This document shows, one piece after another, positions 2,240 to 48,539 of a stretch of 53,334 nucleotides of DNA; position 1 is the first letter of the stretch; the number at the start of each line of letters is the position of its first letter. This stretch comes from Macrostomum lignano. Taxonomy: Eukaryota. Location: NCBI GenBank assembly GCA_002269645.1, contig NIVC01004248.1, forward strand, positions 1 to 53,334, read 5' to 3'. The notes under the pieces are model-generated. The model searched no databases. It saw only the letters and a program-made list of their open reading frames with translations, and was not told the origin of the DNA. A program made the position numbers and the translations under genes.

Positions 2240-4078
2240 TACTTGTACCAGTGCTCTAGTAGCTTTTCAATCCCTTCAGCAAAGAATTCTTTGGTGGTAC
2301 TTCTAATATATTGGCTGACAGCAGAGGCTAGGGCCTGTATGCTATCATAATGGGGACCTCAGGGTAACTCCTTCATCTGCCCAAACAGCCAGTAGTCATT
2401 CAGTGCTAAGTCTATAGTGATAGATCAAAATTATTTTTCAAATCAAAATCAAAATCAAAATCTTCGGTTTTTTAGAATCAAAATCAAAATTGAAATTGAA
2501 ATCAAAATTTTTTGAGCTTAACAAATTTTTACTTTTTGCTAATCATGCAAAAAGGTTAATACCTTGCCTCTGCATGTATGAGCTTACATGTTTTATAAAA
2601 AGTATCTTTGATATGTTTAAACCAGAATACTTAAGATTTAACTTACTTTAAAAATGCAAAATAGAAAATGCTGGTGTATTATGTATTATACACTCGTATA
2701 TAGAAATATAGTAGAAGTTGTATTATACTTCACCACTGTTTAAGCTGAAGATCTAGATACAAGTAGCCTATATCCATTTTATTAAGGCTTTAAGTCTTTA
2801 GGCCAATTAAAATCCATGTTGATGAGTTCAGCCAATAGGCTTGTGGAGGTTAAGGTGGGTGCAGCACAAGGCCTGGAACAGTGTGTGCCCAGCATAATCT
2901 TTTCTTGTAGAAAAGGCAATACTCACCTCCCCACTGAGTCTTTGAACCGCACTTCCTTTCATTTCCTATAGATTTTCTTACTCGTGTAGCATGATCATCA
3001 ATGTCTAAATTGTTAAAATATAACCAAAATTTTGAAATGATTTTCAATGAATGGTGTCAAAATTCAAAATCAAAATCAGCAAATCAGCAATTATTTCAAT
3101 GCAAAATTAGCTTCAAAAAAATTCAGAAAATTGAAATCGAATTTCAATCTATCACTATAAGTCTGGCAAGTAGTGTGGGTTATTGTCCTATTGTCCCTGG
3201 TCAGCTTGCCTTGGTGCTTAGTCTTGATGGCTTGGTGCAAATTCTCTAGCACTTAGATGTAATAAGTATTGGTAATGGTAGTGCGACGTGGAAGCCAGTC
3301 AATGAGCAGAATGCCTCCTTGTCCCAGAAGATGGTTGCCATCTGCTTTCTAGCCAATGGTGCAGCCAGGGCCTTCACTGGGGTGGGCTCTCCAGCTGCCT
3401 TCCAGACGTTGCTCTGCATCTTCGACTCTGGCTCATGTAATGGATCCACAACTCATCCCCAGTCACAATTTAATCCAAAAAGTTTGGGTTGTCGCGGTAG
3501 GCTTGCAGGAGCTGCTGACATACATAGACCCGCTTGTGCTGCTGATCATTTGTCAGAAGCTTCGGGACCCAATGAGCAACAACTCGCGACATCCCAAGCT
3601 TGGCTGTGAGAATTTTGTGAACTGCTGTATAAAAAATATACCCACAGTCTCTGCCAGTTCATGCATGGTGATCCGACAGTCAACATTAAGTGCCTGATGT
3701 ACACACTTGATATTAGACCATGGTGGCTGGCCTTCCACTATGTGGTAGATCTTCAACTGTCTCCTAGCCATCCTCAAACTGCTGCACCACTTGCGGACCA
3801 TCAACTTCAAAGGGGTCATCTTCACCATATCCTGCATGCAACTGGTGAACAATGTTGGCCTGTTGCTTCCCTTCTTTCTACAAGAACCAAATTATGCTTT
3901 GCTTGGCTTCTTCGTAACTTAAAATGACTGCTGTAAAAAATAACAAGCATACTTGTATTTGATTGCACTACCATTAAAAGTTACGGGACAATTGCTGTCT
4001 ATGGCCTAAAGTATGGTGACTTAACTGCTTTTTGTTTGGAAAAATGTTTGTCCACAAACTTTTCAAACGACCCATGTA
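2240..4078 (-). pseudogene. Decayed mariner (Tc1/mariner) transposase, interrupted by an insertion at 2415-3157
   Basis: Minus-strand frames give DLPHSGRP, WVPKLL, IVTGDE, KQMATIFWDKE and ILLIDWLP..TTITN. After removing the insertion they continue PHYLPDLALNDYWLFGQMKE...EFFAEGIEKLLEHW (YSPDL region). Multiple stops and frameshifts. A mariner-like TIR TACATGGGTCGTTTGAAAAGTTTG lies at about 4055-4078 on the - strand. Confidence 0.85.
2415..3157. mobile_element. Non-autonomous hAT-like element, 743 bp, nested in the mariner
   Basis: Perfect 11-bp TIR TAGTGATAGAT / ATCTATCACTA. TSD TAAGTCTA (2407-2414) / TAAGTCTG (3158-3165), 7/8 identical. Subterminal AAAATC repeats at both ends. Confidence 0.8.
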
Positions 4079-5177
4079 TTATAAAAAGATTTTGTTTAAA
4101 AAGAATGTTTTCAAAAAATTTAAAACATTTTTAATAGCAGTTTTCAATCATTCAATCATTTCAATCAAAGTGGCATAACATTGGTGCCATAGTTTGAATT
4201 ATGTATCAGTGTACACTAGGACTAAAAATGTTTTCAACTATGTATACCAAAGTTGTATGCTATTTTTCATTTTTGCTTTTTATTAGTTGTGTAGATTAAC
4301 AAACTTAAATGTTATATACTTGCAACATGCACTGAAAAAAGACAATTTCTATAAAATAAATACTCTAAATATTTTTAAAATAAAATTAAGGAAAAACAAG
4401 GTTTTTAAGGCACAAAGTTTAAAATAGTTTTTTATTATTCTTTGTTCCATGTTGATGGTGTTGCATATAGGATATTTTTATATAAAGTCACCTCTTTAAG
4501 TTTAATTTATTTTGTCATTAGACAATTTGAGGAATTTTCTACCCATTTTATACTTAAGCTTATGCCATAGAAAAAAATAACTAATTTTAATTATTTTTAA
4601 ATAACAGAGGTTTTTTTAAACAACAAAATATTTTTTCATATAAAAATTATGGCAATATTTAAATATAATTTTACTAAATGTTTTGATTAAATACATTTGG
4701 TTTATATGTTGTTTAACCTTATTTAAAATAATATATTATATTATTCATTGTAATTTCATAGAACTAATAGCAATTAAATATATGCAATTATGTTAAAGCA
4801 TCCACTTTTCGATTTTATGCCAATTTTTCTACAATTGTTTCTTAAGCTAAGCATGTACTCTAAGGCTGAATTTAGGACTAAGTTTTTACTAAAAAATTCT
4901 AGCATAGACTAAGGAAGTTTGCACCAACCCAAAGTTGTGGTTAGATTAAAAATCTTTACTATGTATCTGTTCTACTTTCTACTTCTGTTCTATATATATA
5001 TATATGATAAGATAAAATATTTCATTAAAGTTTTTTATTTTATGGTTTATGGCACATTTTAGAAACATCTAGCATAAGTGAAACAAAATGAAGCATTGGG
5101 AACTTTTTTACCCCATGATCATTGTGCATTACACACTTTCCTAGCAAACTTAGCAGAACTGTCTGGATTCCACAATC

Positions 5178-8100
5178 ATGGCAGGCATGGAAGCTGAAAT
5201 AGTCAAAGATGAAACTGGTCAAGAACTAGTCAAACTTGTCATTGTTGACGAGACCAATCAAGGCCAGCCATCTTATGCTTATGTCACGCCTCAAGATGCC
5301 CAGAGAATTCTATCTGGCGAAGCCACCTTGCAAATTGATGAGGAAGGCAATGCTGTTATTGTGGCTACAGAACAGCAGCAGGCTGGTGATGTGGAGACCA
5401 CTGCTCAGAGTGAGCAGCAGCAAGTGAGTTCGAATTATTGTATTGAGAAAACTAAAATTGTGTTTAATTATATATATGCAGTGTACTGAGTTTTGCTAAA
5501 TGATAATGTCCAAGTCTCAGAATTTAAATGCCTGGTCGCTGTACTACTCCAATGCGCTCTCTATCAACCCCTGCCCCCAATGTGCACTCTATCAACCCCT
5601 ACCCCCAATGTGCACTTATCTATCAACCCCTACCCCCAATGTGCACTCGAACAACCCCTACCCACAATGTGCACTTATCTATCAACCCCTACCCCCAATG
5701 TGCACTCTGAACCCCTACCCCCAATGTGCACTCTGAACCCCTACCCCCAATGTGCACTCGATAAACCCCTTCCCACAATGTGCACTTATCTATCAACCCC
5801 TACCCCCAATGTGCACTCTATCAACCCCTACCCCCAATGTGCACTCGATCAACCCCTACCCACAATGTGCACTTATCTATCAACCCCTACCCACAATGTG
5901 CACTTATCTATCAACCCATACCCACAATGTGCACTTATCTATCAAACCCTACCCCCAATGTGCACTTATCTATCAACCCCTACCCACAATGTGCACTTAT
6001 CTATCAACCCCTACCCACAATGTGCACTCTATCAACCCCTACCCCAATGTGCACTCTATCAACCCCTACCGCCAATTCGCACTCTATCAACCCCTACCCC
6101 AAAGTGATCTCTATCAACCCATTGATCAACCCCTACCCCCAATGTACACTCGATCAACCCTTACCCAGTGTACACTCTTACAATCTAATTTTTTGTTTTA
6201 AAAGGCTGAGTCTGCCGAAACGAAGCCAGCGGGCTCTGCTGTTGCGTCCCAGCAGCAGCAACAGCAACAGCAAGAATCCGCAGGCGGCGAAGGTGATGAA
6301 GAACAATTGATCATCACGGAGGAACCTGGCAAAAATGGCGGCCCGCCAACCGTAATCCTCAGCGATTCCCATGGCAACGTGATCACTCGCAAGGAGGTTA
6401 CAAATCCTCATGAGCCAGTTATGCTAGACTATGGCATTCACAAGATCCAATACGTAATGCAGTCAGCTCACGCTGCTGCCACAGCCGCGGCCGCATCTGC
6501 TGCTGCAGCCACTCCCGGTTCGTCATCAAGTGGTAAACTCGCGGCTTCCTCTACTGCGGCTGCTCAGCCACAACAGGCCGCCACAGTGCCCAGTGGCTTA
6601 TCGAAAACTTCCGCGGCTAATGTCACCGCTCAGTTCAGGAGCACCTATCTGCAGCAGGAGCATCTGGATGCGCTGAAGGACGCTGTGGCGTTCCTGTTGA
6701 AGGGTTTGAAGGTAATGACTGTTTCTGTACCCTCGCATGAGTCAGTGACTGTTTCTGTACCCTCCCATGAGTCAGTGACTGTTTCTGTACCCTCCCATGA
6801 GTCAGTGACTGTTTCTGTACCCTCCCATGAGTCAGTGACTGTTTCTGTACCCTCCCATGAGTCAGTGACTGTGTTTCTGTACCCTCCCATGAGTCAGTGA
6901 CTGTTTCCGTACCCTCCCATGAGTCAGTGACTGTTTCTGTACCCTCCCATGAGTCAGTGACTGTTTCTGTACCCTCCCATGAGTCAGTGACTGTGTTTCT
7001 GTACCCTCCCATGAGTCTGTGACTGTTTCTGTACCCTCCCATGATTCAGTGACTGTTTCTGTACCCTCCCATGAGTCAGTGACTGTTTCTGTACCCTCCC
7101 ATGAGTCAGTGACTGCTTCTGTACCCTCCCATGAGTCAGTGACTGTTTCTGTACCCTCCCATGAGTCAGTGACTGCGTTGCTATACCCTCCGTGCATCAA
7201 TACTTTGTTGATCCCAGATCCCGTGTCTTCCTTGTTCAATACGCTAACCCCAAGCCAATGAACACACTCAGGACCGAGTATTCTACCCCGAGCCCTATCA
7301 CAAGCGCTTAGGCAGCTACCAAGCCTACCAAGAGATGGTCAGACTGCAGAGCATCAGCCCAGAGACCGCCACCGAGTCACAACTGGCGCTGCTGCGTCGT
7401 CACTCGATGCTATTCCGACCAAGCGGTCCCAACAGCCGGCCGCTGACTCTCTACGAGCTGTCAGTCAACGAAGCCGCCGCTCAGATCTGCGCCGCTCATC
7501 CTGCTCTACTGTTTCATCGACGGGATTTGGTCAGCTACGCTAGGCAGGCTGTGAAGTACACTGGCATTGATTTTCCAGTGTCTTCACCTGGGCCATCCAT
7601 TGGAACTGTGAGTGGCTTGGTTGCTTAGATTGGCCTGCTCAAAAGTCAGATGATTTCAATCTTCCGAAATCCTCCCAGATCCTCAGTTGCTGGGCCAGCC
7701 TCCCAGATCCCCAGTTGCTGGGCCAGCCTCCCAGATCCTCAGTTGCTGGGCAGCCTCCCATATCCTCATTTGCTGAGCCAGCCTCCCAGATTATCAGTTG
7801 CTGGGCCAGCCTCCCAGATCCTCAGTTTCTGGGCCAGCCTCCCAGATCCCCAGTTGCTGGGCCAGCCTCCCAGATCCTCAGTTTCTGGGCCAGCCTCCCA
7901 GATCCCCAGTTGCTGGGCCAGCCTCCCAGAGTGTCAGTTGCTGGGCCAGCCTTCCAGATCCCCAGTTGCTGGGCCAGCCTCCCAGATCCTCAGTTGCTGG
8001 GCCTGCCTCCCAGATCCTCAGTTGCTGGGCCAGCCTCCCAGAGTGTCAGTTGCTGGGCCAGCCTTAAGCCAACTTGGATCCCACTAAGGTGATTCCTCCC

Positions 8101-11100
8101 CACCCGCAGGCCGGCATGCAGGCCATGGGCCACCGAGCTGCCTCAGCCTCCTCATACCAGAAGTCCGCACCAGCCGCAGCCTCCAGCCTTGCCGGTCGGT
8201 CATCTGTCGCCGGCAGCAGCCGACTAAACGAAGAGGAGCAGGCCCTGATCCGCCAGACTGTGCAAGCAATGCTCAGCGAAGTGGCCTCCGTGCGCAACAA
8301 AGACCGCTACTCTTGTTCCGCTATCGAGCGCTATCTCTACGACGATACTCGCCGACTACAAGAGTTGAAGCAAGCCGGCCAGTTGGACAAGAATCTGGCT
8401 TTCCTGCGTCAGCTGGCCGTTATACACGGCCGGTTCACCCTGGGCCACATCAACCCGCAGGCCGTGCTGACTCCATTCGAAGCCGCTTGCAACGAAGCCG
8501 CCGTCTGGTTTGCCTACGAGAATCCAGCCGTGCTAACGCACCGAAAGCTGCTCATTGAACTGTGCAAACGCGCTGTGAGATCAACTGGCAGGTATTTCCC
8601 ACCGACTGGCGGCATGCCCAGCGATCCAGCTGGCGGTGCAGCCGCTCAGAACCTGACCATCACCTCGCGCGAGAATTCCTTTCACATATCGTTTCAACCG
8701 AACAAGCCGGAGCCCGAGTTCACCTCCACTGAGTCTGTCGTGCTTGAAGATGGCGCTGAAGATGACAGGCTCCCAGCTGAGGTCAACGAAGAGGCTTGGG
8801 CTGTAATCACCGGGGATCAGGATACCGAGGCTGAAGCTCAGGTGAGGAAGTTTTTCCGGGTTTGTCTAGAAGAGTAACCATGAGCTTTAGAATCCCAAAT
8901 TTTCAGAATGGGTGTTTTAGAATCCCAGATCCCTAGAACTGGTGTTTTAGAATCCCAGATCCTCACAATGGGAGTTTTAAAATCCCAAATCCCCGCAATG
9001 GGTTTTAGAATCCCAGCTCTTCACTATGAAGTTTTAAATTCCCAGAAGATCGTCAGAATGGGTGTTTCAGTATCCTAGATTTCAAGAATACGAGTTTTAG
9101 AATCCCAGATCCCAAGAATGGATATTTCAGAATCCCAGATCCCAAGAATGGATATTTCAGAATCCCAGATCCCAAGAATGGGTATTTCAGAATCCCAGAT
9201 CCCAAGAATAAGTATTTCAGAATCCCAGATCCCAAGAATGGGTATTTCAGAATCCCAGATCCCAAGAATGGGAGTTTTAGAATCCCAGATCCCAAGAATG
9301 GGTTTTTCAGAATCCCAGATCCCAAGAATGGGTATTTCAGAATCCAAGATACCAAGAATGGGAGTCTTAGAATCCAAGATCCCAAGAATGGGAGTTTTAG
9401 AATCCAAGATACCAAGAATGGAAGTTTTAGAATCCCAGATTTCAAGAATAAGAGTTTTAGAATCCCAGATCTCAAGAATGGGAGTTTTAGAATCCCAAAT
9501 CCTCACTATGTTAGTTTTAAACACCGAAATCCTTAAACATAAATTTGAAATTTATACTGATTTTGTTTTCCACACAGGGCCGGACCCTGCGCATGACCTG
9601 CACCATAGAGGAGAACTGCCTCACCGATACCCAAATTCTCGTCGCCTCCGGCGCTCACGACATTCGTCACGTGACCTCGCTAAATCTGAGCGGCCTCGGC
9701 TTGACCTCAATTAACCCCGTTCACCTGTCCAAATGCGCTTTTCTACGTCAGCTAGATCTGAGCGAGAATGCGCTGCAGTTCTTGCCCAGGTGTCTGTATC
9801 TGCCCCGACTGACTGTGCTGGACATTTCTGGCAATAATTTTCAGCATGCACCTCTGGTGGAGCAGTTTCCTCTTCTAGAGGAGCTCAAGGTGAGTGATCT
9901 GCATGTAGATTCTCTAGTCCAGCTCTCATTGAGATTCCAGCGTCTCTAGTCCAGCTCTCATTGTGAGATTCCAGCGTCTCTAGTCCAGATCTCATTGTGA
10001 GATTCCAGCGTCTCTAGTCCAGCTCTCATTGAGATTCCAGCGTCTCTAGTCCAGCTCTCATTGAGATTCCAGCGTCTCTAGTCCAGCTCTCATTGTGAGA
10101 TTCCAGCGTCTCTAGTCCAGCTCTCATTGTGAGATTCCAGCGCGTCTCTAGTCCAGCTCTCATTGTGAGATTCCAGCGTCTCTAGTCCAGCTCTCATTGT
10201 GAGATTCCAGCGTCTCTAGTCCAGATCTCATTGTGAGATTCCAGCGTCTCTAGTCCAGATCTCATTGTGAGATTCCAGCGTCTCTAGTCCAGCTCTCATT
10301 GTGAGATTCCAGCGTCTCTAGTCCAGATCTCATTGTGAGATTCCAGCGTCTCTAGTCCAGATCTCATTGTGAGATTCCAGCGTCTCTAGTCCAGATCTCA
10401 TTGTGAGATTCCAGCATCTCTAGTCAAGATCTCATATTAAGATTTTGATGTCTCTAATCCAGATCTCATACTGGAATTCCAGTGTCTCCAATCCAGATCT
10501 CATAGTGGGATTTCAGTGCCCCTTTTCAGCTCCCATTTTGAGATTCCAGTGTCTCCAATACAGATCTCATAGTGAAATTCCAGTGTCTCCAACCCAGATC
10601 TCAGTGAGATTCCAGATCTCATAGTGAGATTACAGATCTCATAGTGAGATTGCAGATCTCATAGTGAGATTACAGATCTCATAGTGAGATACCAGAGTTT
10701 CCAATCCAGATCTCATAGTGAGATTCCAGTGTCTCCAACCCAGATCTCATAGTAAGATTCCAGATCTCATAGTAAGATTCCAGATCTCATAATCAGATTC
10801 CATACCTATAATGTTTCCCAATCGTCTCTATCCAGGTCGACGACAGCGTGCTGTGCAGCGACCTCACTCTGTCCTACTTCAACCCGCGCCTTCGCACCCT
10901 GAACGGCCGGCCATTCAACCCATCCGGCCGCCTCACCGACTCCATGCTGAACGCTCTGCAAAGATCACGTGACGCCATCGTGAAGCAGATCGGCTACAAG
11001 TGGAACGTGGACTACGCCGAGCACTACAAGAAAGGCGTACCGGAGCGCGACGCAAATAAAGTGATTGAAAGCTTCGTGTTGGCTTTGAAGTCTCGCCCGT

Positions 11101-14100
11101 TGCCGCTGGAAGAGCCTTGGTCCCAGTTGAAAGATGTACTCATCAGGCGCTATGTTGGCGACATGCTCAACAGTAAACTGATTCTTGACAAGTCAATCCC
11201 GGCCGAAGTTCGCGATATTGAAGATGGCGAAGGCGAGTCTTCTATTGATCCTCAGGAAGCCAACCGAGCCGTGCTAGAGCGAGCTGTCCGTCGGGGTATG
11301 GCAGTTGTGTACACCGTTGTCAAGTCTCAGGGCGTTGTTGGCAAGCCTACTGCCGACTTCCTGCCAAGCGAAATCTCATTGAGAGGCGCTGCTGCCGCCG
11401 CCGCAGCAGCCGCCGCAGCGGAGCGCAAGCGTGCTAGGCCGGGTCAGGACGACTGGGAGTCCGTGGGGGTGCGCACTCGACCGACTAATAAACGGAAACG
11501 CTACACCGAACTTGGCGTCTTCTCTGAGGAGGAGTATCGAACTTTGAAGACTATCGAAGAGGAGAAGGAGAATCAGAGGCGCGAGATGACTGTACAGCAG
11601 CGTGAGTTGTGCATGTTGTAGCTTTTATTTTATAGCCTTCGTTTCTTAGAAACTGTCTTTAGGTCTTGGTTGGTTTGTTTCTAAGAATCTGTCTCCTTTA
11701 CTGTACAGGTTTATTTCGAAGAAACTCCTCTTTTTCGGTTAGTTTCTAAGAATCTGTCTAATAGTCTGGTTTGTTTCTAAGAATCTGTCTAGTAGTCTTT
11801 GGTTTGTTTCAAAGAATCTGTCTAATAGTCTGGTTTGTTTCTAAGAATCTGTCTAATAGTCTGGTTTGTTTCTAAGAATCTGTCTAATAGTCTTTGGTTT
11901 GTTTCTAAGAATATGTCTAATAGTCTTTGGTTTGTTTCTAAGAATATGTCTAATAGTCTGGTTTGTTTCTAAGAATATGTCTAATAGTCTTTGGTTTGTT
12001 TCTAAGAATATGTCTAATAGTCTTTGGTTTGTTTCAAAGAATCTGTCTAATAGTCTGGTTTGTTTCTAAGAATCTGTCTAATAGTCTGGTTTGTTTCTAA
12101 GAATCTGTCTAATAGTCTGGTTTGTTTCTAAGAATCTGTCTAATAGTCTTTGGTTTGTTTCTAAGAATCTGTCTAATAGTCTTTGGTTTGTTTCTAAGAA
12201 TCTGTCTAATAGTCTGGTTTGTTTCTAAGAATATGTCTAATAGTCTTTGGTTTGTTTCTAAGAATATGTCTAATAGTCTTTGGTTTGTTTCTAAGAATAT
12301 GTCTAATAGTCTTTGGTTTGTTTCAAAGAATCTGTCTAATAGTCTGGTTTGTTTCTAAGAATCTGTCTAATAGTCTGGTTTGTTTCTAAGAATCTGTCTA
12401 ATAGTCTTTAGTTTGTTTCTAAGAATCTGTCTAATAGTCTTTGGTTTGTTTCTAAGAATCTGTCTAATAGTCTTTAGTTTGTTTCTAAGAATCTGTCTAA
12501 TAGTCTTTGGTTTGTTTCTAAGAATCTGTCTAATAGTCTTTGGTTTGTTTCTAAGAATCCTTCACTGTACAGGTTTATTTCTAATAAACTCCTATTTTTC
12601 GGTTAGTTTCTTAGAAACTGTCTTTAGGTCGAGGTGGGCTTGTTTCTAAGAATATGTCTCCTTTACTGTACAGGTTTATTTCTAAGAAACTCTTATTTTT
12701 CAGTTATTTCTTAGAAACCGTCTTTAGGCCTTGGCTGGTTTGTTTCCAAGAAGCAGTCCTAGTCTTGATTGTTTTGTTTCTAAGAACCTGTCTCAGTCTT
12801 CGTTTATTTCCAAGAAACAATTGTCTAACATTTTTTATTTTATTTCTAACAAACAACTCATTGCAGGTATGTTTCTAAGAAACATTCTGCTTTGCTGGTT
12901 TTATTTCTTAGAAACGTTTTTGGAGTCTTCATTGATTTTTTCTAATAATCTCTCCTAGTCTTGGTTTATTTCGAAAAATCACTTTCAGTCTGTTGCTTTG
13001 TTTCTAAGAATCTGTTTCCAAGTCTGTTAGTGTAGATTTGCGTTCAACTACAATGCCTCCCAACCCTGCCACACAGGCCTTCAATACCAGGAGATCAAGA
13101 CCAAGTCCAGCTATACCGAACCGGCCTCGGTTCCAGCGCTGCCGCAGTCTCTCACGGCGTCGGCTGCAGGCGCCACAGCTGCCAGCGCCTCCGGTCGCGC
13201 CCGGGTCAGCTTCCACGAAGAGCCGATGGACGAGTCTGTAGGCGGTAATCTGTCCGACTCGGATATCAACTTGGCCGGTTCGTCCAGCGGCGCCGTTGCC
13301 ATCAGCGGCGGTGCCGGAGTGTCCGGTGGCGGCAACGAACTCCGACCCATCGTCACGGCCTACACCCGGTCACTGCGCGATGTCAGCGATAAATATCGCT
13401 ACCAACCGGTGCACTTTATCCGCTGCCATTCCAAGGATAATAATCCTATGGATGCCGAGACCAAAGTCTGGCGTTGCGCATTCGAACCGGCCATCGGTTC
13501 CAGCGGAGAAGCCATGCCGGACGGGACAACTACTATTGTGGCCACCTGCGGCGGGGACAGCGTCTGTCTAATTGACTGCGACACTGGCAAAGTGGTGAAA
13601 CGGTTCAAGCATTTGAGCGAGGAGTTCTATTGTCTGGCTTGGACCGTTATCCCCATTGAGGATAAGCCGACTAAGATTCTGGGTGAGTTGCTATGGGAAT
13701 TTGTGTTTTTTATAACGCTTTTGGTGGGATTCTAACTCGTGGTGGGGGAGTTCGGGATTTCTAATTAGTGTGGGAGATTTTAAGGGGATTCTATGTAGTA
13801 TGGGGATTTTTAGGGATTAGAATTCGTGTGGAGAATTTTGAGGGGATACTAATTAGTGTGGGATTATTATGGGGTTATAATTAGTATAGGATTCTAATTA
13901 GCGTGTGATAAATATGAAATTCTAATTAGTGTGAGATTTAGGGATTCTAATTAGTGTGGGATTATTATGAGATTCTAATTAGTGTGGGATTATTATGAGA
14001 TTCTAATTAGCGTGGGATTATTATAGGATTATTATGGAATTCTAATTAGTGTGGGATTATTGTGGGATTCTAATTAGTGTGGGATTATTTAAGGATTGTA

Positions 14101-15982
14101 ATTAGTGTGAGGACTTTCGGGGATTTCTAATAGGATTTTTATCTGAAGATTTATAGCATACGTATATGAGGATGCTTTCAGCAATCTTTAAAACTCCCCT
14201 TTGTTTTTATCCCATTCCCAACTATGATTTTCCCAACCAACCCCATTCGCAGCCGCCGCTGGCCGACTCCGCATGATCCGGCTGCTGTACCCCGACCAGA
14301 TGGTCTGCTACAGCGAGATGCAGGGCCACCGGGACGAGATCGCCTGTCTGGCCTTCCACCCCAACCAGCCCACCGTGCTGTTCTCAGGCGACAGCAAAGC
14401 CGCCATCCTGGTCTGGGATATCGGCATCCCCATGCCGCCGGACTTCCAGGCCAGCTACACCCTGCTGGCTAAGCTGCGCTGTCCCCGTCCGGATGTGAAT
14501 CCCGTGCTCAATCTGGTGTTCATGCCGACTCTGGACTGCCTCATTGCCGGCTGCGAAGATGGCATCTTCGTCTGGAAGATGGCCAGCGTGATGTCTGACA
14601 ACAGCAAGGCGCTGCCTGAGCGGGAACCAGACGCTGAGATCAAAGTGCCAACTAATAAAGAGCCCTGCTTTGACGGCCTGTGCCTGCTGAATGACACAGT
14701 TCTAGTGAGCAAATGCGTTGAAGAGGGCCGACTGGTGATCTTCGACCTGTACTCTGTGTATGCCAAGATGACCGGCCATTTCAAGACCATCTTTGTCGAC
14801 ATTCTCGGCTCGGTTCGGTGGAAAACTACTGACGAGATTTATATCAACTGCTCGGCCAGGCCCGGTGTCCAGGCCGTCACCTGCGGCGACAATGAGGGCA
14901 ACATCTGGATTTACGATTTTAGCCGGATTAACTGGGCCGGCGTAAGCCGCAAGAACAAGTTCCGCATGGAGGCTTCCAAGATTCTGCCCTGGCCGCAGTG
15001 CTCCGTTGGAGGCGACGGCAGGATGCCTGAGGTGAGCTGGTTTATTCTATTATAATCTAATAAGCCTCCCAGATCCTCAGTTGCTGGGCTGCCAGCCTCC
15101 CAGATCCTCAGTTGCTGGGCCAGCCTCCCAGATCCTCAGTTTCTGGGCCAGCCTTCCAGATCCTCAGTTGCTGGGCCAGCCTCCCAGATCCCCAGTTGCT
15201 GGGCTGCCAGCCTCCCAGATCCTCAGTTGCTGGGCCAGCCTCCCAGATCCTCAGTTTCTGGGCCAGCCTCTCAGTCTCAGATCCTCAGTTGCTGGGCCAG
15301 CCTCCCAGATCCTCAGTTTCTGGGCTGCCAGCCTCCCAGATCCTCAGTTGCTGGGCTGCCAGCCTCCCAGATCCTCAGTTGCTGGGCCAGCCTCCCAGAT
15401 CCTCAGTTTCTGGGCCAGCCTTCCAGATCCTCAGTTGCTGGGCCAGCCTTCCAGATCCCCAGTTGCTGGGCCAGCCTCCCAGATCCCCAGTTGCTGGGCC
15501 AGCCTTCCAGACCCCCAGTTGCTGGGCCAGCCTCCCAGATCCTCAGTTGCTGGGCCAGCCTTCCAGATCCCCAGTTGCTGGGCCAGCCTCCCAGATCCCC
15601 AGTTGCTGGGCCAGCCTCCCAGATCCTAGATCCAGCCACATCGGCAGCTCCCCCCAACCCGCTCGCTACCCAGGAGAGCTCGGCAGGCAGCCGGGAGCAC
15701 AGCCCAGTTGTGAACACCACAGACGCCAGCGGCGATGGCCAGTTCATCTGCGCAGTCACGGACAACAATCTGGTGTGCATCTGGAAGGCGTCAGCAGCGG
15801 AACCTGGCGCCGCTGGTCAGGGCGAGCTGGACCAGTCCGGCACCTCCACTGCCGTGGCTGCAGCCAGCAGCAGCGTCCAGCTGGCCTCCTCTGGCCAGCA
15901 TGAGGTGGCGGACTTGGACGCTGAGCCGCGGTCTCGGGCGGCTGGCAGCGGCGGAGTCGGCCGGCCCAAGCGATCCACTTAG
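5178..15982 (+). CDS. LRWD1: Predicted ~1530-aa protein: acidic N-terminus, 2x NAB NCD2-like domains, then LRR and WD40 regions of LRWD1/ORCA (9 exons)
   Basis: Exons 5178-5423, 6205-6711, 7272-7607, 8110-8841, 9578-9889, 10836-11601, 13077-13682, 14253-15031, 15674-15982. All introns are GT-AG with matching phases (0,0,0,0,0,1,1,0); total 4593 nt, open to TAG at 15980-15982. AATAAA at 16059-16064. The exon 4 and 9 acceptors are best guesses among in-frame options. Confidence 0.75.
5553..6170. repeat. 28/31-bp C-rich minisatellite (TATCAACCCCTACCCCCAATGTGCACTC), intron 1 of gene 1
   Basis: Tandem copies read directly; source of the repetitive ORFs at 5493-6310. Confidence 0.9.
6717..7173. 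repeat. 30-bp minisatellite (GACTGTTTCTGTACCCTCCCATGAGTCAGT), intron 2
   Basis: Near-identical copies with 30-bp period. Confidence 0.95.
7272..7607 (+). other. Exon encoding NAB conserved domain 2-like repeat 1
   Basis: RPLTLYELSVNEAAAQICAAHPALLFHRRDLVSYARQAV closely matches the recalled NAB1/2 NCD2 motif LTLHELTVNEAAAQLC..ALLTRRDELFALARQ. Confidence 0.8.
7669..8063. repeat. 28-bp minisatellite (CCTCCCAGATCCTCAGTTGCTGGGCCAG), intron 3
   Basis: Tandem copies; same family as 15063-15627 and 18553-19520. Confidence 0.95.
8110..8841 (+). other. Exon encoding a more divergent NCD2-like repeat 2
   Basis: LAVIHGRF...VLTPFEAACNEAAVWFAYENPAVLTHRKLLIELCKRAVRSTG aligns by eye to NCD2 (SAIYGRF...LTLHELTVNEAA) and to repeat 1. 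Confidence 0.65.
8885..9510. repeat. 30-bp minisatellite (CAGAATCCCAGATCCCAAGAATGGGTATTT), intron 4
   Basis: 30-bp periodicity with degenerate edges. Confidence 0.9.
9909..10800. repeat. 32/34-bp minisatellite (CTCTAGTCCAGCTCTCATTGTGAGATTCCAGCGT) grading into 20-bp CAGATCTCATAGTGAGATTA units, intron 5
   Basis: Tandem copies read directly. Confidence 0.9.
11660..13030. repeat. 31/33-bp AT-rich minisatellite (TCTAAGAATCTGTCTAATAGTCTTTGGTTTGTT), intron 6
   Basis: Homogeneous core at about 11750-12560 with degenerate flanks. Confidence 0.9.
13760..14135. repeat. Degenerate ~28-bp repeat (GATTCTAATTAGTGTGGGATTATTATG), intron 7
   Basis: Recurrent TCTAATTAGTGTGGGATT at about 25-28 bp spacing. Confidence 0.8.
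15063..15627. repeat. 28-bp minisatellite, second locus, intron 8
   Basis: Same unit as 7669-8063. Confidence 0.95.
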
Positions 15983-16789
15983 CTGTCCATCAGGCACGGG
16001 TTTCATGCACCCAATTGAAGCAGAACTCTCTTAAACTTGTAAATAATCTTATTTAAACAATAAAAACTACAGTAATATCTCTGTCGGCCTACTAACAATA
16101 TAGCAAGTAAAAATAGTTAGTAGCATGAAGAGGGTTGTAATGTTATGTTATATATAATAATTGCGTCATTTAAATATTTGTTACTTATCCCATCATTGTG
16201 CAAAACTATATTCTTTTAATTTTTGTTGTTTTTTGTGTGGCATAAAATGGCAGCTGCTGAAAAAAAACATTTACGCCCCCGTAATGTTTACACTCGCACT
16301 ACTTTACATTAGTAGTATCACGAATGCGTTTCTACTATATGTTACTAATTAGTAGTCTGATATCTAATCATGGTAAGTAATATTGTTGTAAAATTCTTGT
16401 CTACGAGACGCGTTAAAAATTCAAATTTGTGCAACGTAACTTACAATTTTTGGTTGATGTCTTGTAATTATTATTAATAGCTGTCTGGTTGGTTAATCTT
16501 GAAATAAATTATTAATTAAATAAATACAAACATTCATATTCTACTACTGTCAGCTTGGCAACCATTTGTACTTTTATTATCTATTTTTGGCCTGAAAAGA
16601 TGATTGAATTAAATCTTCTCTGCAAACTGTTTTATTAGCAGTTATGATAATTATAATAATTAGTTTTTAATTAAAACATTAGATAAATTTGTATTAGTTG
16701 ATCATGGGGTGAAAATCATTTTAACAATCATTCAACAATACAACAATCATTTTGACATAATGAGATTTGAGACTTGACTGATTGATTTT

Positions 16790-17190: not shown

Positions 17191-19925
17191 TCAAAGTCCC
17201 TGCTCACAGAGCCGGTCGAGTTTCAGAAAATCCTCAACTTCCAAGGCCCTTGTACTCAGTCCGTAGCATCGCATCCAGCCTGCCAAGCAGCTCTCAGACG
17301 CGGGAGCGAATCCCAGTCTCAGACAGGAGAATCGGTCAGCTTCATCGCTAGATCCCATCTCTAATCCGAGTCCGATTTCGGTGCGGCTTAGAAAAGTCCC
17401 GTTCAAATAGAATCTTGGATTTCTGCTGGCGTTGTAATAGACAAATCCCAGTGACATTGACTGCGGGATTAATGGCTTGGTCCCTGTGTTGGGGAATGTA
17501 TTGGCAACCGACTGGAAGTATGTGCCTCTGATGCCGTTCTCTGACCAGTAGGCATAGTTGTACATGTAGCTGCTGCCTTTGGCGAATGTATTGCCGCTGC
17601 TGCTGTTGTTGCACTGCTGGAATCGGTGGTAGAACTGGTACCTGCGTGATGTGGTGAAATGACATTGATGAAGGTAAGAGTTTTGGGGTGTTGGGGGTAC
17701 GAGTTTGGAGGTTGTTGGGGGGAAGAATTTTGGATTGTTGGGGCAGAGTTTTAGGGTGTTGGGGTGGGGGGTACGAGTTTGGAGGTTGTTGGGGGGGAAG
17801 AATTTTGGATTGTTGGGGGTACGAGTTTTGGGGTGTTGGGGGGTAAGAGTTTTGGGGTGGTGGGGATAAGAGTTTTGGGGTGGTGGGGTAAGAGTTTTGG
17901 GATGGTGGGATTAAGAGTTTTGGGTGTTGGGGGTAAGAGTTTTGGGGTGGTGGGGGTAAGAGTTTTGGTTGTTGGGGGTAAGAGTTTTTGGGTGGTGGGG
18001 GGTAAGAGTTCTGAGGTGGTAGGGGTAAGAGTTGGGAGTGGTGGGGGGGGGTAACAGTTTGGGGTGGCGCAGGGGGTGCGCTCATTAGTTTTGTGTCGGG
18101 ACAAGTGCGGATCATGGGAATCCGCGCTTCCCATGAAGTCCGTTATTCCCTCCGTTGTGTCTTTGTGGGTTCCAATCAGTGTATCCAATTTGTAAATTTA
18201 TGTTTGGCATATTGTCAACTCGTTTATCTGAGTGAAATAAATGACAAAAACACACGCACGCACCTGTTGTCCAACAGGTGCTGCACCTTTGCGTATACAG
18301 AGAAAGAACCGTTGCGTTTGAGAATATTTTCGAATCCCGGTGTCTCCACGCTCAGGTAGGATTCATTGTGGCCTCCAAGCTGCACTCCATCGGCGTCCAG
18401 TGTGGCATTGCGGGCTGACAGGCAGAACTGCCTAGGATCGACTTGGTTGATGAGGCCCGACTGACGGAAATTGTAGAACAGCTTCATGCCGAGGCTGGTG
18501 AGGGCATCTGGAAGGTCAGGTGGGTGGGTGATTGCATAAGCTTGACATATACTCAGTTGCTGGGCCAGCCTCCCAGATCCTCAGTTTCTGGGCCAGCCTC
18601 CCAGATCCCCAGTTTCTTGGCCAGCCTCCCAGATCCCCAGTTGCTGGGCCAGCCTCCCAGATCCTCAGTTGCTGGGCAGCCTCCCAGATCCCCAGTTGCT
18701 GGGCCAGCCTCCCAGATCCTCAGTTGCTGGGCCAGCCTCCCAGATCCCCAGTTGCTGGGCCAGCCTCCCAGATCCTCAGTTGCTGGGCCAGCCTCCCAGA
18801 TCCCCAGTTGCTGGGCCAGCCTCCCAGATCCTCAGTTGCTGGGCAGCCTCCCAGATCCCCAGTTGCTGGGCCAGCCTCCCAGATCCTCAGTTGCTGGGCC
18901 AGCCTCCCAGATCCCCAGTTGCTGGGCCAGCCTCCCAGATCCTCAGTTGCTGGACCAGCCTCCCAGATCCTCAGTTGCTGGGCCAGCCTCCCAGATCCCC
19001 AGTTGCTGGGCCAGCCTCCCAGATCCTCTGCAGTTGCTAGGTCAGCCTCCCAGATCCCCAGTTGCTGGGCCAGCCTCCCAGATCCTTATTTGCTGGGTAA
19101 CCAGCCTCCCAGATCCTCAGTTGCTTGGCAACCAGCCTCCCAGATCCTCAGTTGCTGGGCAACCAGCCTCCCAGATCCTCAGTTGCTGGGCCAGCCTCCC
19201 AGATCCTCAGTTTCTGGGCCAGCCTCCCAGATCCTCAGTTTCTGGGCCAGCCTCCCAGATTCTCAGTTGCTGGACAGCCTCCCAGATCCTCAGTTGCTAG
19301 GCCAGCCTCCCAGATCCTCTGCAGTTGCTAGGTCAGCCTCCCAGATCCTCAGTTGCTAGGCCAGCCTCCCAGATCCTCTGCAGTTGCTAGGTCAGCCTCC
19401 CAGATCCTCAGTTGCTGGGTCAGCCTCCCAGATCCTCAGTTGCTGGGCCAGCCTCCCAGATCCTCAGTTGCTGGGCAGTCAGCCTCTCAGATCCCCATTT
19501 GCTAGGCCAGCCTCCCACCAGATTCTCAAGCTAAAACCGATCACCAAGTCCATTTGGCACTGCTAACCATCAGACGCGGTAGGCTCGCTAGCCGAGTGGA
19601 AAAACGAGCTGCAACCCCCATCCGGAATCCACTGCTGCGCAGTCGAGGCGCACGCTTTACCAAGGAAACAGATGCCGCTGCTAGAATTGAAATGAAAGCC
19701 GTTGCAGACAGACTTGCTGGAGCACAGGACGCTGCAGTCGGCCTCGCTCTCAGTTCTGACAATGAATTCCGAAAACTTCTCCGTTTGCAGACTCAAATTT
19801 GAGTAGTTGTAAATTGCTGGACACAGCTCAGTCTTTTTGAACGATAATCCAGAGGCTCGAACACTCAGATCCGGCCAGGCTGCTGTTATTGCTGCCACCA
19901 GAGTGATGAAGCTTCTAAAAGTCAT
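17191..19925 (-). CDS. Secreted PAN/apple domain + LamG/concanavalin-like protein, about 350 aa, 3 exons
   Basis: Exons 19925-19568, 18507-18264 and 17641-17191; GT-AG, phases 1 and 2 consistent; 1053 nt. Signal-peptide-like MTFRSFITLVAAITAAW. PAN cysteine pattern CSVLCSSKSVCNGFHFNSSSGICFL. The LamG-like assignment of the C-terminal half is by eye only. Confidence 0.7.
17675..18060. repeat. G-rich 23-24-bp repeat (GGTAAGAGTTTTGGGGTGGTGGG), intron 2 of the PAN gene
   Basis: Tandem G-run units; same family at 20795-21270. Confidence 0.85.
18553..19520. repeat. 28-bp minisatellite, third locus, intron 1 of the PAN gene
   Basis: Same unit and orientation as 7669-8063 and 15063-15627. Confidence 0.95.
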
Positions 19926-21467: not shown

Positions 21468-30914
<9,447 letters not shown>

Positions 30915-44265: not shown

Positions 44266-47200
44266 CATCTATCCATCTATCTATCCATCTATCTATCTAT
44301 CCATCTATCTTCTGTCTGTCTGTCTGGCTGACCGTAACTGACCACCCTAACATTTCCAGCCCCCATGAGCTGAGATTGCAGTCTTACGCATGAAAACCCA
44401 ATAATTGACAGCCGGAAAATGCCAGCAGGTAAACAGTCAGAGCAACTATGCACGCGTTTAAATAGTAGCAATGCTTCGTCATCTTCCGAGTCAAAGCCTT
44501 GGCTATGGGCATACAGTATGTAGTTTATAAAAATTGCCAAATAGAGTCAGTCTCTAAATATAGTTAATTATTCTCATAATTTCTACTCAATACTTCCAAA
44601 CCAAAATAGAGTCAGTCTCTAAATATAGTTAATTATTCTCATAATTTCTACTCAATACTTCCGCACGTCCATTTTCAAGGACGTCAGGTAAATTCAAAGC
44701 TTGCACAGCTAAAAGTCTGGTAAAATAACAATTATATTTTCAATTATTTTAAAAAAGCGTTATTTCCCATTTTAAATACTCTTAGTAGGCAATAAGCTTA
44801 TTTTATAATTTTTTTCAATACTAATTTAATTTACTAATTTATAATTACATACAAAGTGTTTTTTGTTTTACTCTGTAAACCAATTTTCTTTAATAGATTG
44901 TCACACCTTAAACCATCACTCTTCAATATCTCTGTCACTCCTTAAACCATCACTCTTCAATATCTCTGTCACTTTTTAAACAATCACTTTTCAATATCTC
45001 TGTCACTCCCTAAACCATCACTCTTCAATATCTCTGTCACTTCTTAAACCCTTAAACCATCACTCTTCAATATCTCTGTCACTTCTTAAACCCTTAAACC
45101 ATCACTCTTCAATATCTCTGTCACTCCTTAAACCATCACTCTTCAATATCTCTGTCACTCCTTAAACCATCATTCTTCAATATCTCTGTCACTCCTTAAA
45201 CCATCACTCTTCAATATCTTTGTCACTCCTTAAACAATCACTCTTCAATATCTCTGTCACTCCTTAAACCATCACTCTTCAATATCTCTGTCACTCCTTA
45301 AACCATCACTCTTCAATATCTTTGTCACTCCTTAAACAATCACTCTTCAATATCTCTGTCACTCCTTAAACCATCACTCTTCAATATCTCTGTCACTCCT
45401 TAAACCATCAGTCTTCAATATCTCTGTCACTCCTTAAACCATCACTCTTCAATATCTTTGTCACTCCTTAAACAATCACTCTTCAATATCTCTGTCACTC
45501 CTTAAACCATCACTCTTCAATATCTGTCACTCCTTAAACCATCACTCTTCAATATCTCTGTCACTCCTGAAACCATCACTCTTCAATATCTTTGTCACTC
45601 CTTAAACAATCACTCTTCAATATCTCTGTCACTCCTTAAACCATCACTCTTCAATATCTCTGTCACTCCTTAAACCATCACTCTTCAATATCTCTGTCAC
45701 TCCTTAAACCATCATTCTTCAATATCTCTGTCACTCCTTAAACCATCACTCTTCAATATCTTTGTCACTCCTTAAACCATCACTCTTCAATATCTCTGTC
45801 ACTTTTTAAACAATCACTTTTCAATATCTCTGTCACTCCTTAAACCATCACTCTTCAATATCTTTGTCACTCCTTAAACAATCACTCTTCAATATCTCTG
45901 TCACTCCTTAAACCATCACTCTTCAATATCTCTGTCACTCCTTAAACCATCATTCTTCAATATCTCTGTCACTCCTTAAACCATCACTCTTCAATATCTT
46001 TGTCACTCCTTAAACAATCACTCTTCAATATCTCTGTCACTCCTTAAACCATCACTCTTCAATATCTCTGTCACTCCTTAAACCATCACTCTTCAATATC
46101 TTTGTCACTCCTTAAACAATCACTCTTCAATATCTCTGTCACTCCTTAAACCATCACTCTTCAATATCTCTGTCACTCCTTAAACCATCACTCTTCAATA
46201 TCTTTGTCACTCCTTAAACAATCACTCTTCAATATCTCTGTCACTCCTTAAACCATCACTCTTCAATATCTGTCACTCCTTAAACCATCACTCTTCAATA
46301 TCTCTGTCACTCCTTAAACCATCACTCTTCAATATCTTTGTCACTCCTTAAACAATCACTCTTCAATATCTCTGTCACTCCTTAAACCATCACTCTTCAA
46401 TATCTCTGTCACTCCTTAAACCATCACTCTTCAATATCTTTGTCACTCCTTAAACAATCACTCTTCAATATCTCTGTCACTCCTTAAACCATCACTCTTC
46501 AATATCTCTGTCACTCCTTAAACCATCACTCTTCAATATCTTTGTCACTCCTTAAACAATCACTCTTCAATATCTCTGTCACTCCTTAAACCATCACTCT
46601 TCAATATCTGTCACTCCTTAAACCATCACTCTTCAATATCTTTGTCACTCCTTAAACCATCACTCTTCAATATCTTTGTCACTCCTTAAACAATCACTCT
46701 TCAATATCTCTGTCACTTTTTAAACAATCACTATTCAATATCTCTGTCACTCCTTAAACCCTTAAACCATCACTCTTCAATATCTCTGTCACTTTTTAAA
46801 CAATCACTCTTCAATATCTCTGTCACTTCTTAAACCCTTAAACCATCACTCTTCAATATCTCTGTCACTCCTTAAACCATCACTCTTCAATATCTCTGTC
46901 ACTCCTTAAACCATCATTCTTCAATATCTCTGTCACTCCTTAAACCATCACTCTTCAATATCTTTGTCACTCCTTAAACAATCACTCTTCAATATCTCTG
47001 TCACTCCTTAAACCATCACTCTTCAATATCTGTCACTCCTTAAACCATCACTCTTCAATATCTTTGTCACTCCTTAAACCATCACTCTTCAATATCTTTG
47101 TCACTCCTTAAACAATCACTCTTCAATATCTCTGTCACTTTTTAAACCATCACTCTTCAATATCTCTGTCACACCTTAAACCATCACAGTTCAATATTCG

Positions 47201-48539
47201 TCACTCATGAGACAGGTGTAAACCCCAATAACCCATTAAACTTCCAGCCACTACAAAATCATCAAACGCACCTCCAGTTTAACGCTGGCATCTCGGCGGA
47301 TCAATTGTACATCCAACAGCAGCACGGGTGTAACGCAGCTGACGGCACCTTCAACTCCGTGACTCGTACCGCTAATGACTCGAATCTCGGCGCCGCCGTC
47401 CTCAGTTCGAACTCGGGGCAAATCGTCAGGCGCTACTTCTGTGTAGACAGGATTGCAGAGCTTGTCAGCTGGCGGCAGGTTTACCCAGATCTGGTAGCCT
47501 TCAAGAGTTCCCCCAGATTCCACTAGAGCTGGACCGGGCATCTCAAAGTGCACCAGACCGCGGCCGAATCGAATGTGCTGCACGGTGCCCGCCGGCAGGA
47601 CGCTGTCATGTCCCGCACTGTCGGCGTGATGCACGCTGCCCTGCAGCAGGACGCTGATCAGCTCCATGCCTCTGTTAGAAATCAGCGAGATTTATATTCT
47701 GACATATCCATTGTGAAAGCTGAGATAGGCCTACAGTACATATGACTTATTTCATAGAAAGTCAACGCCACATCTTTGAAAATTGAATATTTCTTGGAAA
47801 CCGGAAACCATTTCTTAAAATTTTCTAGGAAATTGGACTGTTTTGAAAGCTATTTCTAAGAAATTAGATGCTTTTGAAAGCTATTTCTAAGAAATTGGAT
47901 TGTTTTGAAAGCTATTTCTAAGAAATTGGATTGTTTTGAAAGCTATTTCTAAGAAATTCGATTGCTTTGAAAACTGTTTCTAAGAAATTGAATGCTTTTG
48001 AAAGCTATTTTCAAGAAATTGGATTCTTCTGAAAGCTGCTTAAATGAATTTTGATTCTACTGAGAGCAATTTTTAAGAAAATTGATTCTGAGAGCGATTT
48101 CTAAGAAATTTGATTCTCCTGAAAGCTAACTTCAAGAATTTGGATTCTGGAAACTATGTCTAGAAAGTTGAAACGGCTGTACACCACGAACTGGAAAGCT
48201 AGTCACTCCTGTCATAATAATTTTTTCATTTTCAAAATTCCATTAGAAGTTTTTGACTATTTCTTTTAAATCCTTTAAATCATTAATAACAATACTAAGT
48301 ATTGTCTGAGCTATTAATGAAATCATTTTAATTAAACAAGACAAGCATTACCTGTGCGGATGATCTGCAGCTCCCACAGCTTCCCCAGGCCGAAAAGTGA
48401 CTGGGCCAATATGATCAAACAGTAGAAACGGGTCCGAAGCTTCAGTATCGTCAATAACTTTATACACTGGCAGGCCAGATTCCATTTGATATTGTGCGCA
48501 TTGTTGCGAGTCTGACTGTGTGCGATCTTTTACTCGCAT
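43392..48539 (-). CDS. PIR: Pirin (bicupin, iron-binding), about 317 aa, 3 exons
   Basis: Exons 48539-48352, 47671-47272 and 43757-43392; GT-AG, phases 2 and 0; 954 nt. Motifs DPFLLFDH, DHPHRG, HADSAGH, GRGLVHFE (His/His/His/Glu ligands intact), QIWVNLP and EPVVKYGPF. Confidence 0.92.
43875..44310. repeat. Two (TCTA)n/(TCCA)n microsatellites (about 43875-43967 and 44228-44310) in pirin intron 2
   Basis: Read directly. Confidence 0.95.
44895..47190. repeat. 34-bp satellite, about 2.3 kb (TCACTCCTTAAACCATCACTCTTCAATATCTCTG), pirin intron 2
   Basis: 34-bp period, roughly 65-70 copies. Confidence 0.97.
47825..48165. repeat. 31-bp repeat (TTTGAAAGCTATTTCTAAGAAATTGGATTGT), pirin intron 1
   Basis: 31-bp period, degenerate ends. 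Confidence 0.85.

Follow-up and report, generated by a model that had tools for sequence, protein, structure and literature searches.

The interval 5178-15982 on the forward strand of contig NIVC01004248.1 is one gene of Macrostomum lignano, Mlig008621.g5, and we hold with high confidence that it encodes a flatworm form of LRWD1/ORCA, in which a 607-residue extension carrying tandem NCD2 domains is joined in frame to a complete LRWD1. The window (the whole stretch of DNA that was analysed) comprises positions 1 to 53,334 of this contig. The gene has nine coding exons, and all of its introns are of the GT-AG type. The exon list of the preliminary description was slightly amended, the start of exon 3 and the bounds of exons 6 to 8 being corrected to those given here:

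5178..5423, + strand: exon 1; residues 1-82; start ATG at 5178-5180; conserved N-terminal motif at about residues 5-48
6205..6711, + strand: exon 2; residues 83-251; low-complexity, rich in Q/A/S; NCD2 copy 1 begins at about 6631
7272..7607, + strand: exon 3; residues 252-363; core of NCD2 copy 1
8110..8841, + strand: exon 4; residues 364-607; NCD2 copy 2 and acidic linker; 3' end CAG|GTGAGG
8842..9577, + strand: intron 4; 736 nt, phase 0; donor GTGAGG, acceptor CCACACAG; the disputed junction
9578..9889, + strand: exon 5; residues 608-711; GRTLR, Met613 (9593-9595), LRWD1 N-terminal head and first LRRs
10836..11601, + strand: exon 6; residues 712-967; remainder of the LRR_LRWD1 domain and middle region
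13077..13682, + strand: exon 7; LRWD1-type WD40 propeller begins at about 13400
14253..15031, + strand: exon 8; WD40 propeller
15674..15982, + strand: exon 9; WD40 propeller ends at about 15790; C-terminal tail; TAG stop at 15980-15982
16059..16064, + strand: first AATAAA 3' of the stop codon; probably serves the fused mRNA as its poly(A) signal

Spliced together, the nine exons give 4593 nt and a protein of 1530 aa, to which the NCBI entry PAA48055.1 is identical (100% identity, full length). The number of residues ahead of the exon 4/5 junction, put earlier at about 605, was computed as 607.

Residues 608-1530 constitute the complete LRWD1, composed of the LRR and the LRWD1-type WD40 segments. 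The LRR_LRWD1 profile (PF23211) scored 45.8 bits (cut-off 28) over profile positions 16-164 of 190, at residues ~637-791 (genomic 9665-11075), while WD_LRWD1 (PF23215) scored 200.6 bits (cut-off 30.7) over positions 11-387 of 388. The LRWD1 structures 8siy and 8siu were matched with E values of 4e-69 and 5e-58, respectively. The LRR domain aligns to residues 24-143 of 8siy; counted from Met613, the alignment begins at residue 25, which corresponds to chain residue 24. Met613 lies five codons past the 9578 acceptor and coincides with the canonical LRWD1 N-terminus. The N-terminal LRR and the C-terminal propeller, both near full length, are shared with the human and mouse LRWD1/ORCA (8siy, 8siu). 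The mammalian protein begins ~24 residues ahead of its first LRR, whereas the flatworm protein has ~610 additional N-terminal residues with two NCD2 domains and the conserved N-terminal motif, and its middle region is longer and of low complexity.

The extension opens with the conserved motif, continues with two helical domains of the NCD2 fold separated by a disordered linker, and closes with the acidic linker. In residues 1-607 the Pfam NCD2 profile (PF04905) was matched with 71 bits in two stretches. Scanned alone, copy 1 (residues ~225-352; genomic 6631-7574, spanning intron 2) reached 49.5 bits and copy 2 (residues ~400-532; genomic 8218-8616) reached 28.8 bits, both above the gathering score of 25 bits. 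NCD2, LRR and WD40, the domains named in the preliminary description, thus all exceed their Pfam cut-offs. An AF2 model of residues 224-539 comprises two helical modules (mean pLDDT 72.9), for which the sole meaningful PDB match by Foldseek was 2yuf, the NCD2 of human NAB1 (probability 1.00, TM 0.63). A profile built from flatworm sequences matched 2yuf as well, in NCD2 copy 2, with an E value of 1.3e-11. The N-terminal motif is 57-61% identical to contigs of DRR639055, and residues 1-145 of the M. lignano protein share 33% identity with M. corti.

NCD2 is a portable repression domain, and NCD1 is the domain by which NABs bind EGR factors and which also mediates multimerisation. To our knowledge NCD2 has no established binding partner, mammals included. 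The Pfam scan for NCD1 (SAM_NCD1, PF04904) gave no match at E<=1 in residues 1-618 or in four sub-segments; canonical mollusc NABs, scanned identically, carry this domain at 146-152 bits. Assignment of the N-terminal half to the NAB family was rejected because NCD1 is absent, and the label of EGR corepressor used in the earlier account is not transferable. What is shared with NAB1/NAB2 is the NCD2 fold and its sequence signature, with PF04905 above threshold twice and 2yuf as the only structural match. The flatworm protein differs from them in being devoid of the EGR-binding NCD1/SAM domain and in having NCD2 tandemly duplicated and joined to LRWD1. Its NCD2s also cluster away from those of canonical NABs in a neighbour-joining tree of one 128-aa block, a tree that bears no support values. 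In NAB proteins, NCD2 is described as a transcriptional-regulation domain (PMC2768752).

The junction between the two parts reads as had been stated, with exon 4 ending in GCT CAG|gtgagg (8841) and exon 5 opening as ttttccacacag|GGC CGG (9578), both in phase 0. The reported lack of AATAAA in the intervening intron was reproduced for 8842-9577 and extends to ATTAAA; only CATAAA is present, at 9538. The donor GTGAGG matches the cis-donor motif of M. lignano, GT[G/A]AG. The acceptor shares its 8-mer with intron 6 and departs from the [T/C]TNCAG motif that is enriched at spliced-leader (SL) sites. By a rule quoted in PMC8629364, cis-splicing is to be expected at an acceptor that has a cis donor upstream of it. 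Intron 4 has, at both ends, the signals of ordinary cis-splicing. Splice-site compatibility by itself is weak evidence, because about one third of junctions are in phase, and the fusion question is settled by transcript and comparative data and not by the match of splice phases.

Supplementary Table 2 of PMC5816591 lists Mlig008621.g5 (Length 5281, TRANSSPLICED, Pfam NCD2+LRR+WD40) with LRWD1 as its human reciprocal best hit and assigns it to the category 'Neoblast, stringent'; the table gives no coordinate for the SL site. The mRNA is SL trans-spliced at its 5' end and is enriched in neoblasts, the proliferating somatic stem cells. A search for the spliced-leader sequence itself found none within the window. 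In the construction of the gene set (TBONE), SL-read peaks and poly(A) sites served as the points at which transcriptional units were cut (PMC5730564), and the transcript model of Mlig008621.g5 is uncut at 9578. The basis for the 8841^9578 splice junction is this published transcript model and not individual RNA-seq reads.

The order and frame of NCD2 and LRWD1 are repeated in at least six other flatworm genomes. In L007 (Logan DRR639055), a single exon at 2822-3465 has one frame open throughout, which covers NCD2 copy 2, the linker and the LRWD1 head; the LRR exon comes next. In L008 (a cestode, SRR24765318), the exon at 3025-4926 holds both NCD2 copies and the LRWD1 head, and exons for the LRR and WD_LRWD1 lie downstream. 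The site equivalent to the M. lignano junction is likewise within an exon in Cichlidogyrus and F. gigantica. Gene predictions for two trematodes and one cestode (Dicrocoelium, Mesocestoides and F. gigantica) include full-length proteins with two NCD2 domains, LRR and WD_LRWD1, and partial models with NCD2 and the LRWD1 LRR were found in one monogenean, a further trematode and a further cestode. Because a single exon spans NCD2 copy 2 into the LRWD1 head in other flatworms, the fusion is at least as old as the divergence of Macrostomorpha from the parasitic flatworms, and the architecture is therefore an old flatworm trait. The single protein of ~1530 aa with two NCD2s ahead of an intact LRWD1, as originally proposed, is supported by the 5281-nt transcript model, the SL/poly(A)-cut gene set and the junction-spanning exons in two flatworm genomes. 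An intron shared with trematodes is not claimed, because phase and position differ: the trematode introns are of phase 1 and lie 4-5 codons before 'LSL(S/T)', whereas the M. lignano intron is of phase 0 and lies 3 codons ahead of the aligned 'LRM'. Word-index protein searches with the full fusion, the junction fragment and a block alignment returned almost nothing; low-complexity and LRR words flooded the candidate list, and the query centred on the junction missed even the gene's own protein.

The fused mRNA could be the main product and be accompanied by minor isoforms, a variant that we consider unlikely. One such isoform would be an LRWD1-only mRNA trans-spliced at 9578, with a predicted product of 918 aa. 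The other would retain intron 4 and run into the TAA at 8875-8877, 11 codons past the donor, giving an NCD2-only protein of 618 aa. The M. lignano SL ends in ATG, which is in frame if joined at 9578, and an LRWD1-only trans-spliced isoform is therefore mechanically possible; Met613 and the early stop also speak for such isoforms. In SL organisms, cis- and trans-splicing can compete for a single acceptor. The published gene table argues against such isoforms, as it has no second gene model at the locus, and the models that it lists (g1, g3 and g5) are all fused.

The same mechanical features would also serve an operon of two genes, in which an NCD2-only gene ends at the early TAA, LRWD1 is SL trans-spliced at 9578 with translation starting at the SL AUG or at Met613, and annotation has wrongly turned a polycistronic precursor into one fused model. 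SL trans-splicing affects about 30% of M. lignano genes, and 15% of the genes belong to operons, whose spacers are often filled with repeats and have a repeat-adjusted spacing of ~100 nt. Intron 4 contains a 30-bp minisatellite (8886-9502) and, minus this array, is ~120 nt long, which resembles such spacers. The locus is further like an M. lignano operon in that it has, one behind the other on a single strand, two coding units that were ancestrally separate, with a repeat-filled spacer of 736 nt and a CAG acceptor between them. In the WormBase MAKER models the donor is another one (...EEAWA|GRTLR), and therefore at least one fused model was built without read guidance. In contrast to the operons, a consensus cis donor (8841/8842) precedes the spacer in phase with the acceptor, the spacer is free of both poly(A) hexamers, the acceptor is outside the SL-site motif, and the TBONE set, cut at SL and poly(A) sites, retains one mRNA with NCD2 and WD40. 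In two other flatworm genomes, moreover, a single uninterrupted exon is collinear with both flanks of the junction. We judge the operon very improbable. A chimera of assembly or gene prediction, such as a mis-joined contig, can be dismissed as next to impossible: the Mlig_3_7 assembly contains many repeats and is duplicated in part, and other models of the gene are clearly faulty (P0006, spuriously extended to 2361 aa, and P0002, truncated), but three paralogous M. lignano loci on three separate contigs have the same arrangement with intron 4 and its flanks identical, the earlier ML2 assembly also yields fused models, and gene order and frame recur across the other flatworm genomes.

For the single fused protein, a function may be proposed by homology. 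In mammals, repressive histone marks are bound by the WD40 domain of LRWD1, and ORC and H3K9 methyltransferases are associated with the protein (PMC9233303, PMC4442312). The WD40 and LRR part of the flatworm protein would act likewise, reading repressive histone methyl marks such as H3K9me3, H3K27me3 and H4K20me3, binding ORC and scaffolding H3K9 methyltransferases. The tandem NCD2 would, by its homology to the NAB domain, supply a covalently attached surface for repression or protein interaction at LRWD1 sites. Because the EGR-binding NCD1 is absent, this module probably acts independently of EGR factors. LRWD1/ORCA connects replication licensing with heterochromatin, and the fusion may couple NCD2 functionally to both. 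It might also be read as a 'Rosetta stone', according to which repression by the NCD2 of NABs runs via the heterochromatin machinery of LRWD1, ORC and H3K9 methyltransferases, NAB NCD2 contacts LRWD1 or its partners in other animals, and the link is hard-wired in flatworm stem cells; we regard this broader proposal as speculative and doubtful. Retention of the fusion in free-living and parasitic flatworms, together with its neoblast expression in M. lignano, predicts that the two activities act jointly. The fusion makes testable both the identity of the NCD2 binding partner and whether flatworm LRWD1 silences chromatin via NCD2, questions that can be addressed in M. lignano with the transgenesis and RNAi that exist for this species.

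The preliminary description did not recall this architecture as described. This holds for the literature open to search, in which no paper that discusses the NCD2-LRWD1 architecture was found, but not for public annotations. Broad annotation, one of the refuting conditions set in that description, is indeed present: the architecture is catalogued in models of several flatworms in NCBI, UniProt and WormBase ParaSite and in the published supplementary table.

The 53,334-bp window covers the entire Macrostomum lignano contig NIVC01004248.1 (assembly GCA_002269645.1, Mlig_3_7). The gene model rebuilt from its sequence has nine exons, all GT-AG, which sum to 4593 nt. The spliced product of 1530 aa is identical end to end to NCBI PAA48055.1 (BOX15_Mlig008621g5), which bears out the single protein of ~1530 aa proposed in the preliminary description. 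Exon GC is ~55-68% in the window and the introns are mostly AT-richer; all eight carry a minisatellite (period ~28-34 bp, 4-25 copies).

Exons of the rebuilt gene model and minisatellites of its introns
5178-5423, + strand, exon 1
5549-6120, intron 1 minisatellite
6205-6711, + strand, exon 2
6716-7191, intron 2 minisatellite
7272-7607, + strand, exon 3
7671-8064, intron 3 minisatellite
8110-8841, + strand, exon 4
8886-9502, intron 4 minisatellite
9578-9889, + strand, exon 5
9911-10802, intron 5 minisatellite
10836-11601, + strand, exon 6
11737-12559, intron 6 minisatellite
13077-13682, + strand, exon 7
13754-14131, intron 7 minisatellite
14253-15031, + strand, exon 8
15063-15627, intron 8 minisatellite
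15674-15982, + strand, exon 9

The junction that joins the upstream extension to LRWD1 reads GCT CAG|gtgagg at 8841 and ttttccacacag|GGC CGG at 9578, in phase 0 on both sides, as originally described. The claimed lack of AATAAA in intron 4 was likewise found: neither AATAAA nor ATTAAA occurs in 8842-9577, where only CATAAA is present, at 9538. Retention of this intron would add 11 further codons before a stop (TAA, 8875-8877).

A Pfam scan of residues 1-618 returned NCD2 at 71 bits in two stretches, with no other notable match and no NCD1. The two NCD2 domains claimed at the outset each exceed the Pfam gathering score of 25 bits when scanned alone (copy 1, ~residues 225-352, 49.5 bits; copy 2, ~residues 400-532, 28.8 bits). 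A flatworm-sequence profile matched PDB 2yuf, the NCD2 of human NAB1, with E 1.3e-11. The AlphaFold2 model of residues 224-539 (mean pLDDT 72.9) comprises two helical modules with a disordered linker between them, and 2yuf is its sole meaningful PDB match (probability 1.00, TM 0.63 on target). The downstream half matched LRR_LRWD1 (45.8 bits), WD_LRWD1 (200.6 bits, profile positions 11-387/388) and PDB 8siy (E 4e-69); by these matches it is a complete LRWD1, in line with the intact LRWD1 first claimed. Because the 8siy alignment begins at residue 25, numbered from Met613 (9593-9595), versus chain residue 24, the fusion point lies at the ancestral LRWD1 N-terminus. Two short motifs of the N-terminal extension, at residues ~5-48 (window 5190-5321) and at ~6340-6400 (TVILSDSHGNVITRK), are common to flatworm orthologues and have no Pfam match. 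Motif identity is 57-61% in the DRR639055 contigs, and the cestode 'TVLLEDDKGNVIDQK' resembles the second.

We searched 1.84 billion representative proteins by phmmer with residues 223-607. The closest relatives were flatworm proteins only, each also bearing LRWD1 parts, whereas canonical NABs (NCD1 and one NCD2) scored far lower.

Fused proteins in other flatworms
Fasciola gigantica (trematode), 1605 aa, NCD2x2 + LRR + WD_LRWD1
Dicrocoelium dendriticum (trematode), 2092 aa, NCD2x2 + LRR + WD_LRWD1
Mesocestoides corti (cestode), 1950 and 1992 aa, NCD2x2 + LRR + WD_LRWD1
F. hepatica (trematode), partial model, NCD2 + LRWD1 LRR
Dibothriocephalus latus (cestode), partial model, NCD2 + LRWD1 LRR
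Cichlidogyrus casuarinus (monogenean), partial model, NCD2 + LRWD1 LRR

Exon 2822-3465 of a flatworm Logan contig (L007, DRR639055) is a single open frame encoding NCD2 copy 2, the linker and then '...EARMKGETMYLECEPVDNVLSEAAILQITGTDDLR', which aligns with the M. lignano '...EAEAQ|GRTLRMTCTIEENCLTDTQILVASGAHDIR' as one HSP across the junction; a GT-AG intron and an LRR exon follow. Linker alignments between flatworms have low similarity except in the conserved head. In a Logan contig (L008, SRR24765318) from a cestode ~70% identical to M. corti, the two NCD2 copies share exon 3025-4926 with the LRWD1 head, followed downstream by LRR and WD_LRWD1 exons. The junction equivalent falls within an exon in Cichlidogyrus and F. 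gigantica also. Since the junction region is exonic in all four, the fused frame is independent of the M. lignano intron. It is older than the Macrostomorpha/Neodermata split. A published table (PMC5816591) names planarian dd_Smed_v6_2942 and Schistosoma Smp_160000 as orthologues. In a neighbour-joining tree of one 128-aa block, drawn without support values, parasitic flatworms seem to have two paralogue types of the fused gene: one with Fasciola, Cichlidogyrus and D. latus model P0014, the other with Dicrocoelium, Mesocestoides and D. latus model P0109, both types being present in D. latus. The DRR639055 sample has two copies (L006, L007).

Mlig008621.g5 is one 5281-nt transcript in Supplementary Table 2 of Grudniewska et al. 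2018 (PMC5816591), with Pfam NCD2, LRR and WD40, human LRWD1 as reciprocal best hit, and the flag TRANSSPLICED; the table gives no coordinate for the spliced-leader (SL) site. Minor isoforms alongside the fused mRNA, either LRWD1-only trans-spliced at 9578 or NCD2-only with the intron retained, are conceivable but rather unlikely. An operon boundary at 8842-9577, with an NCD2 gene upstream and LRWD1 SL trans-spliced at 9578, is highly improbable. In M. lignano, ~30% of genes are SL trans-spliced by a leader ending in ATG, ~15% lie in operons, and operon spacers are often repeat-filled, ~100 nt after removing repeats (PMC8629364); here the 736-nt spacer contains a 617-bp repeat array and the acceptor at 9578 is in frame, with Met613 just downstream, so these features could mark a boundary. 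However, the TBONE pipeline, source of the NCBI models, splits transcriptional units at SL-read peaks and experimentally mapped poly(A) sites (PMC5730564), yet it left this gene uncut. The 5281 nt agree with the fused 4593-nt CDS plus UTRs, whereas an LRWD1-only mRNA is expected at ~2.9 kb. The donor GTGAGG agrees with the species cis-donor motif GT[G/A]AG, and the acceptor 8-mer CCACACAG is that of intron 6, within the LRWD1 part, and unlike [T/C]TNCAG, the motif enriched at SL acceptors.

The mRNA of the fused gene is lowered by irradiation and raised in S/G2/M cells, and belongs to the 'Neoblast, stringent' set of 357 genes (PMC5816591). Mammalian LRWD1 is described (PMC9233303, PMC4442312) as reading repressive histone marks through WD40, associating with ORC and scaffolding H3K9 methyltransferases; by analogy, the flatworm LRWD1 part would do likewise. 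In NAB proteins, NCD2 is a transcriptional-regulation domain and NCD1 binds EGR (PMC2768752). The NCD2 tandem would provide a repression or interaction surface at LRWD1-bound sites; the fusion, unlike NABs, is without NCD1, and an EGR link is therefore not expected. Every functional statement on the fused protein is drawn from homology. The main value of the locus is the conserved domain fusion, which predicts that repression by NAB-type NCD2 is functionally tied to the heterochromatin machinery of LRWD1/ORC.

The architecture had been put forward as possibly undescribed; it is in fact present in NCBI, UniProt and WormBase ParaSite models, and NCD2 + LRR + WD40 appears in the published supplementary table (PMC5816591). 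The literature searched contained no co-mention of LRWD1 with 'flatworm' or 'NCD2', and no main-text mention of Smp_160000 or dd_Smed_v6_2942. The architecture is catalogued but, it seems, undiscussed and uncharacterised. Several other models of the same M. lignano gene are faulty: among P0004, P0005 and P0006 (UniProt/WormBase ParaSite), the 1506-aa models use another donor (...EEAWA|GRTLR) and skip EQFPLLEELK, and the 2361-aa model has a spurious ~850-aa N-terminal extension; P0002 (Mlig008621.g3) takes an internal Met as its start and has a frameshifted tail. Pfam found no helicase domain in the Fasciola models P0009 or P0101, only NCD2, LRR and WD_LRWD1, and the name given to P0009, P0101, P0102 and the Hymenolepis/Echinococcus UniRef50 clusters looks like a propagated mis-annotation.

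The 28-bp unit CCTCCCAGATCCTCAGTTGCTGGGCCAG fills introns 3 and 8 and recurs outside the gene at 18552-19517 (34 copies). Many further 16-61-bp arrays fill 16-53 kb of the window, and a 2.3-kb array at 44899-47206 (34-bp unit TGTCACTCCTTAAACCATCACTCTTCAATATCTC, 67 copies) accounts for the strongly negative GC skew between 44 and 48 kb. An ORF at 25832-26425 (- strand) matches the last part of a kinesin motor domain and then Kinesin_assoc, pointing to a kinesin-3-like gene on that strand.
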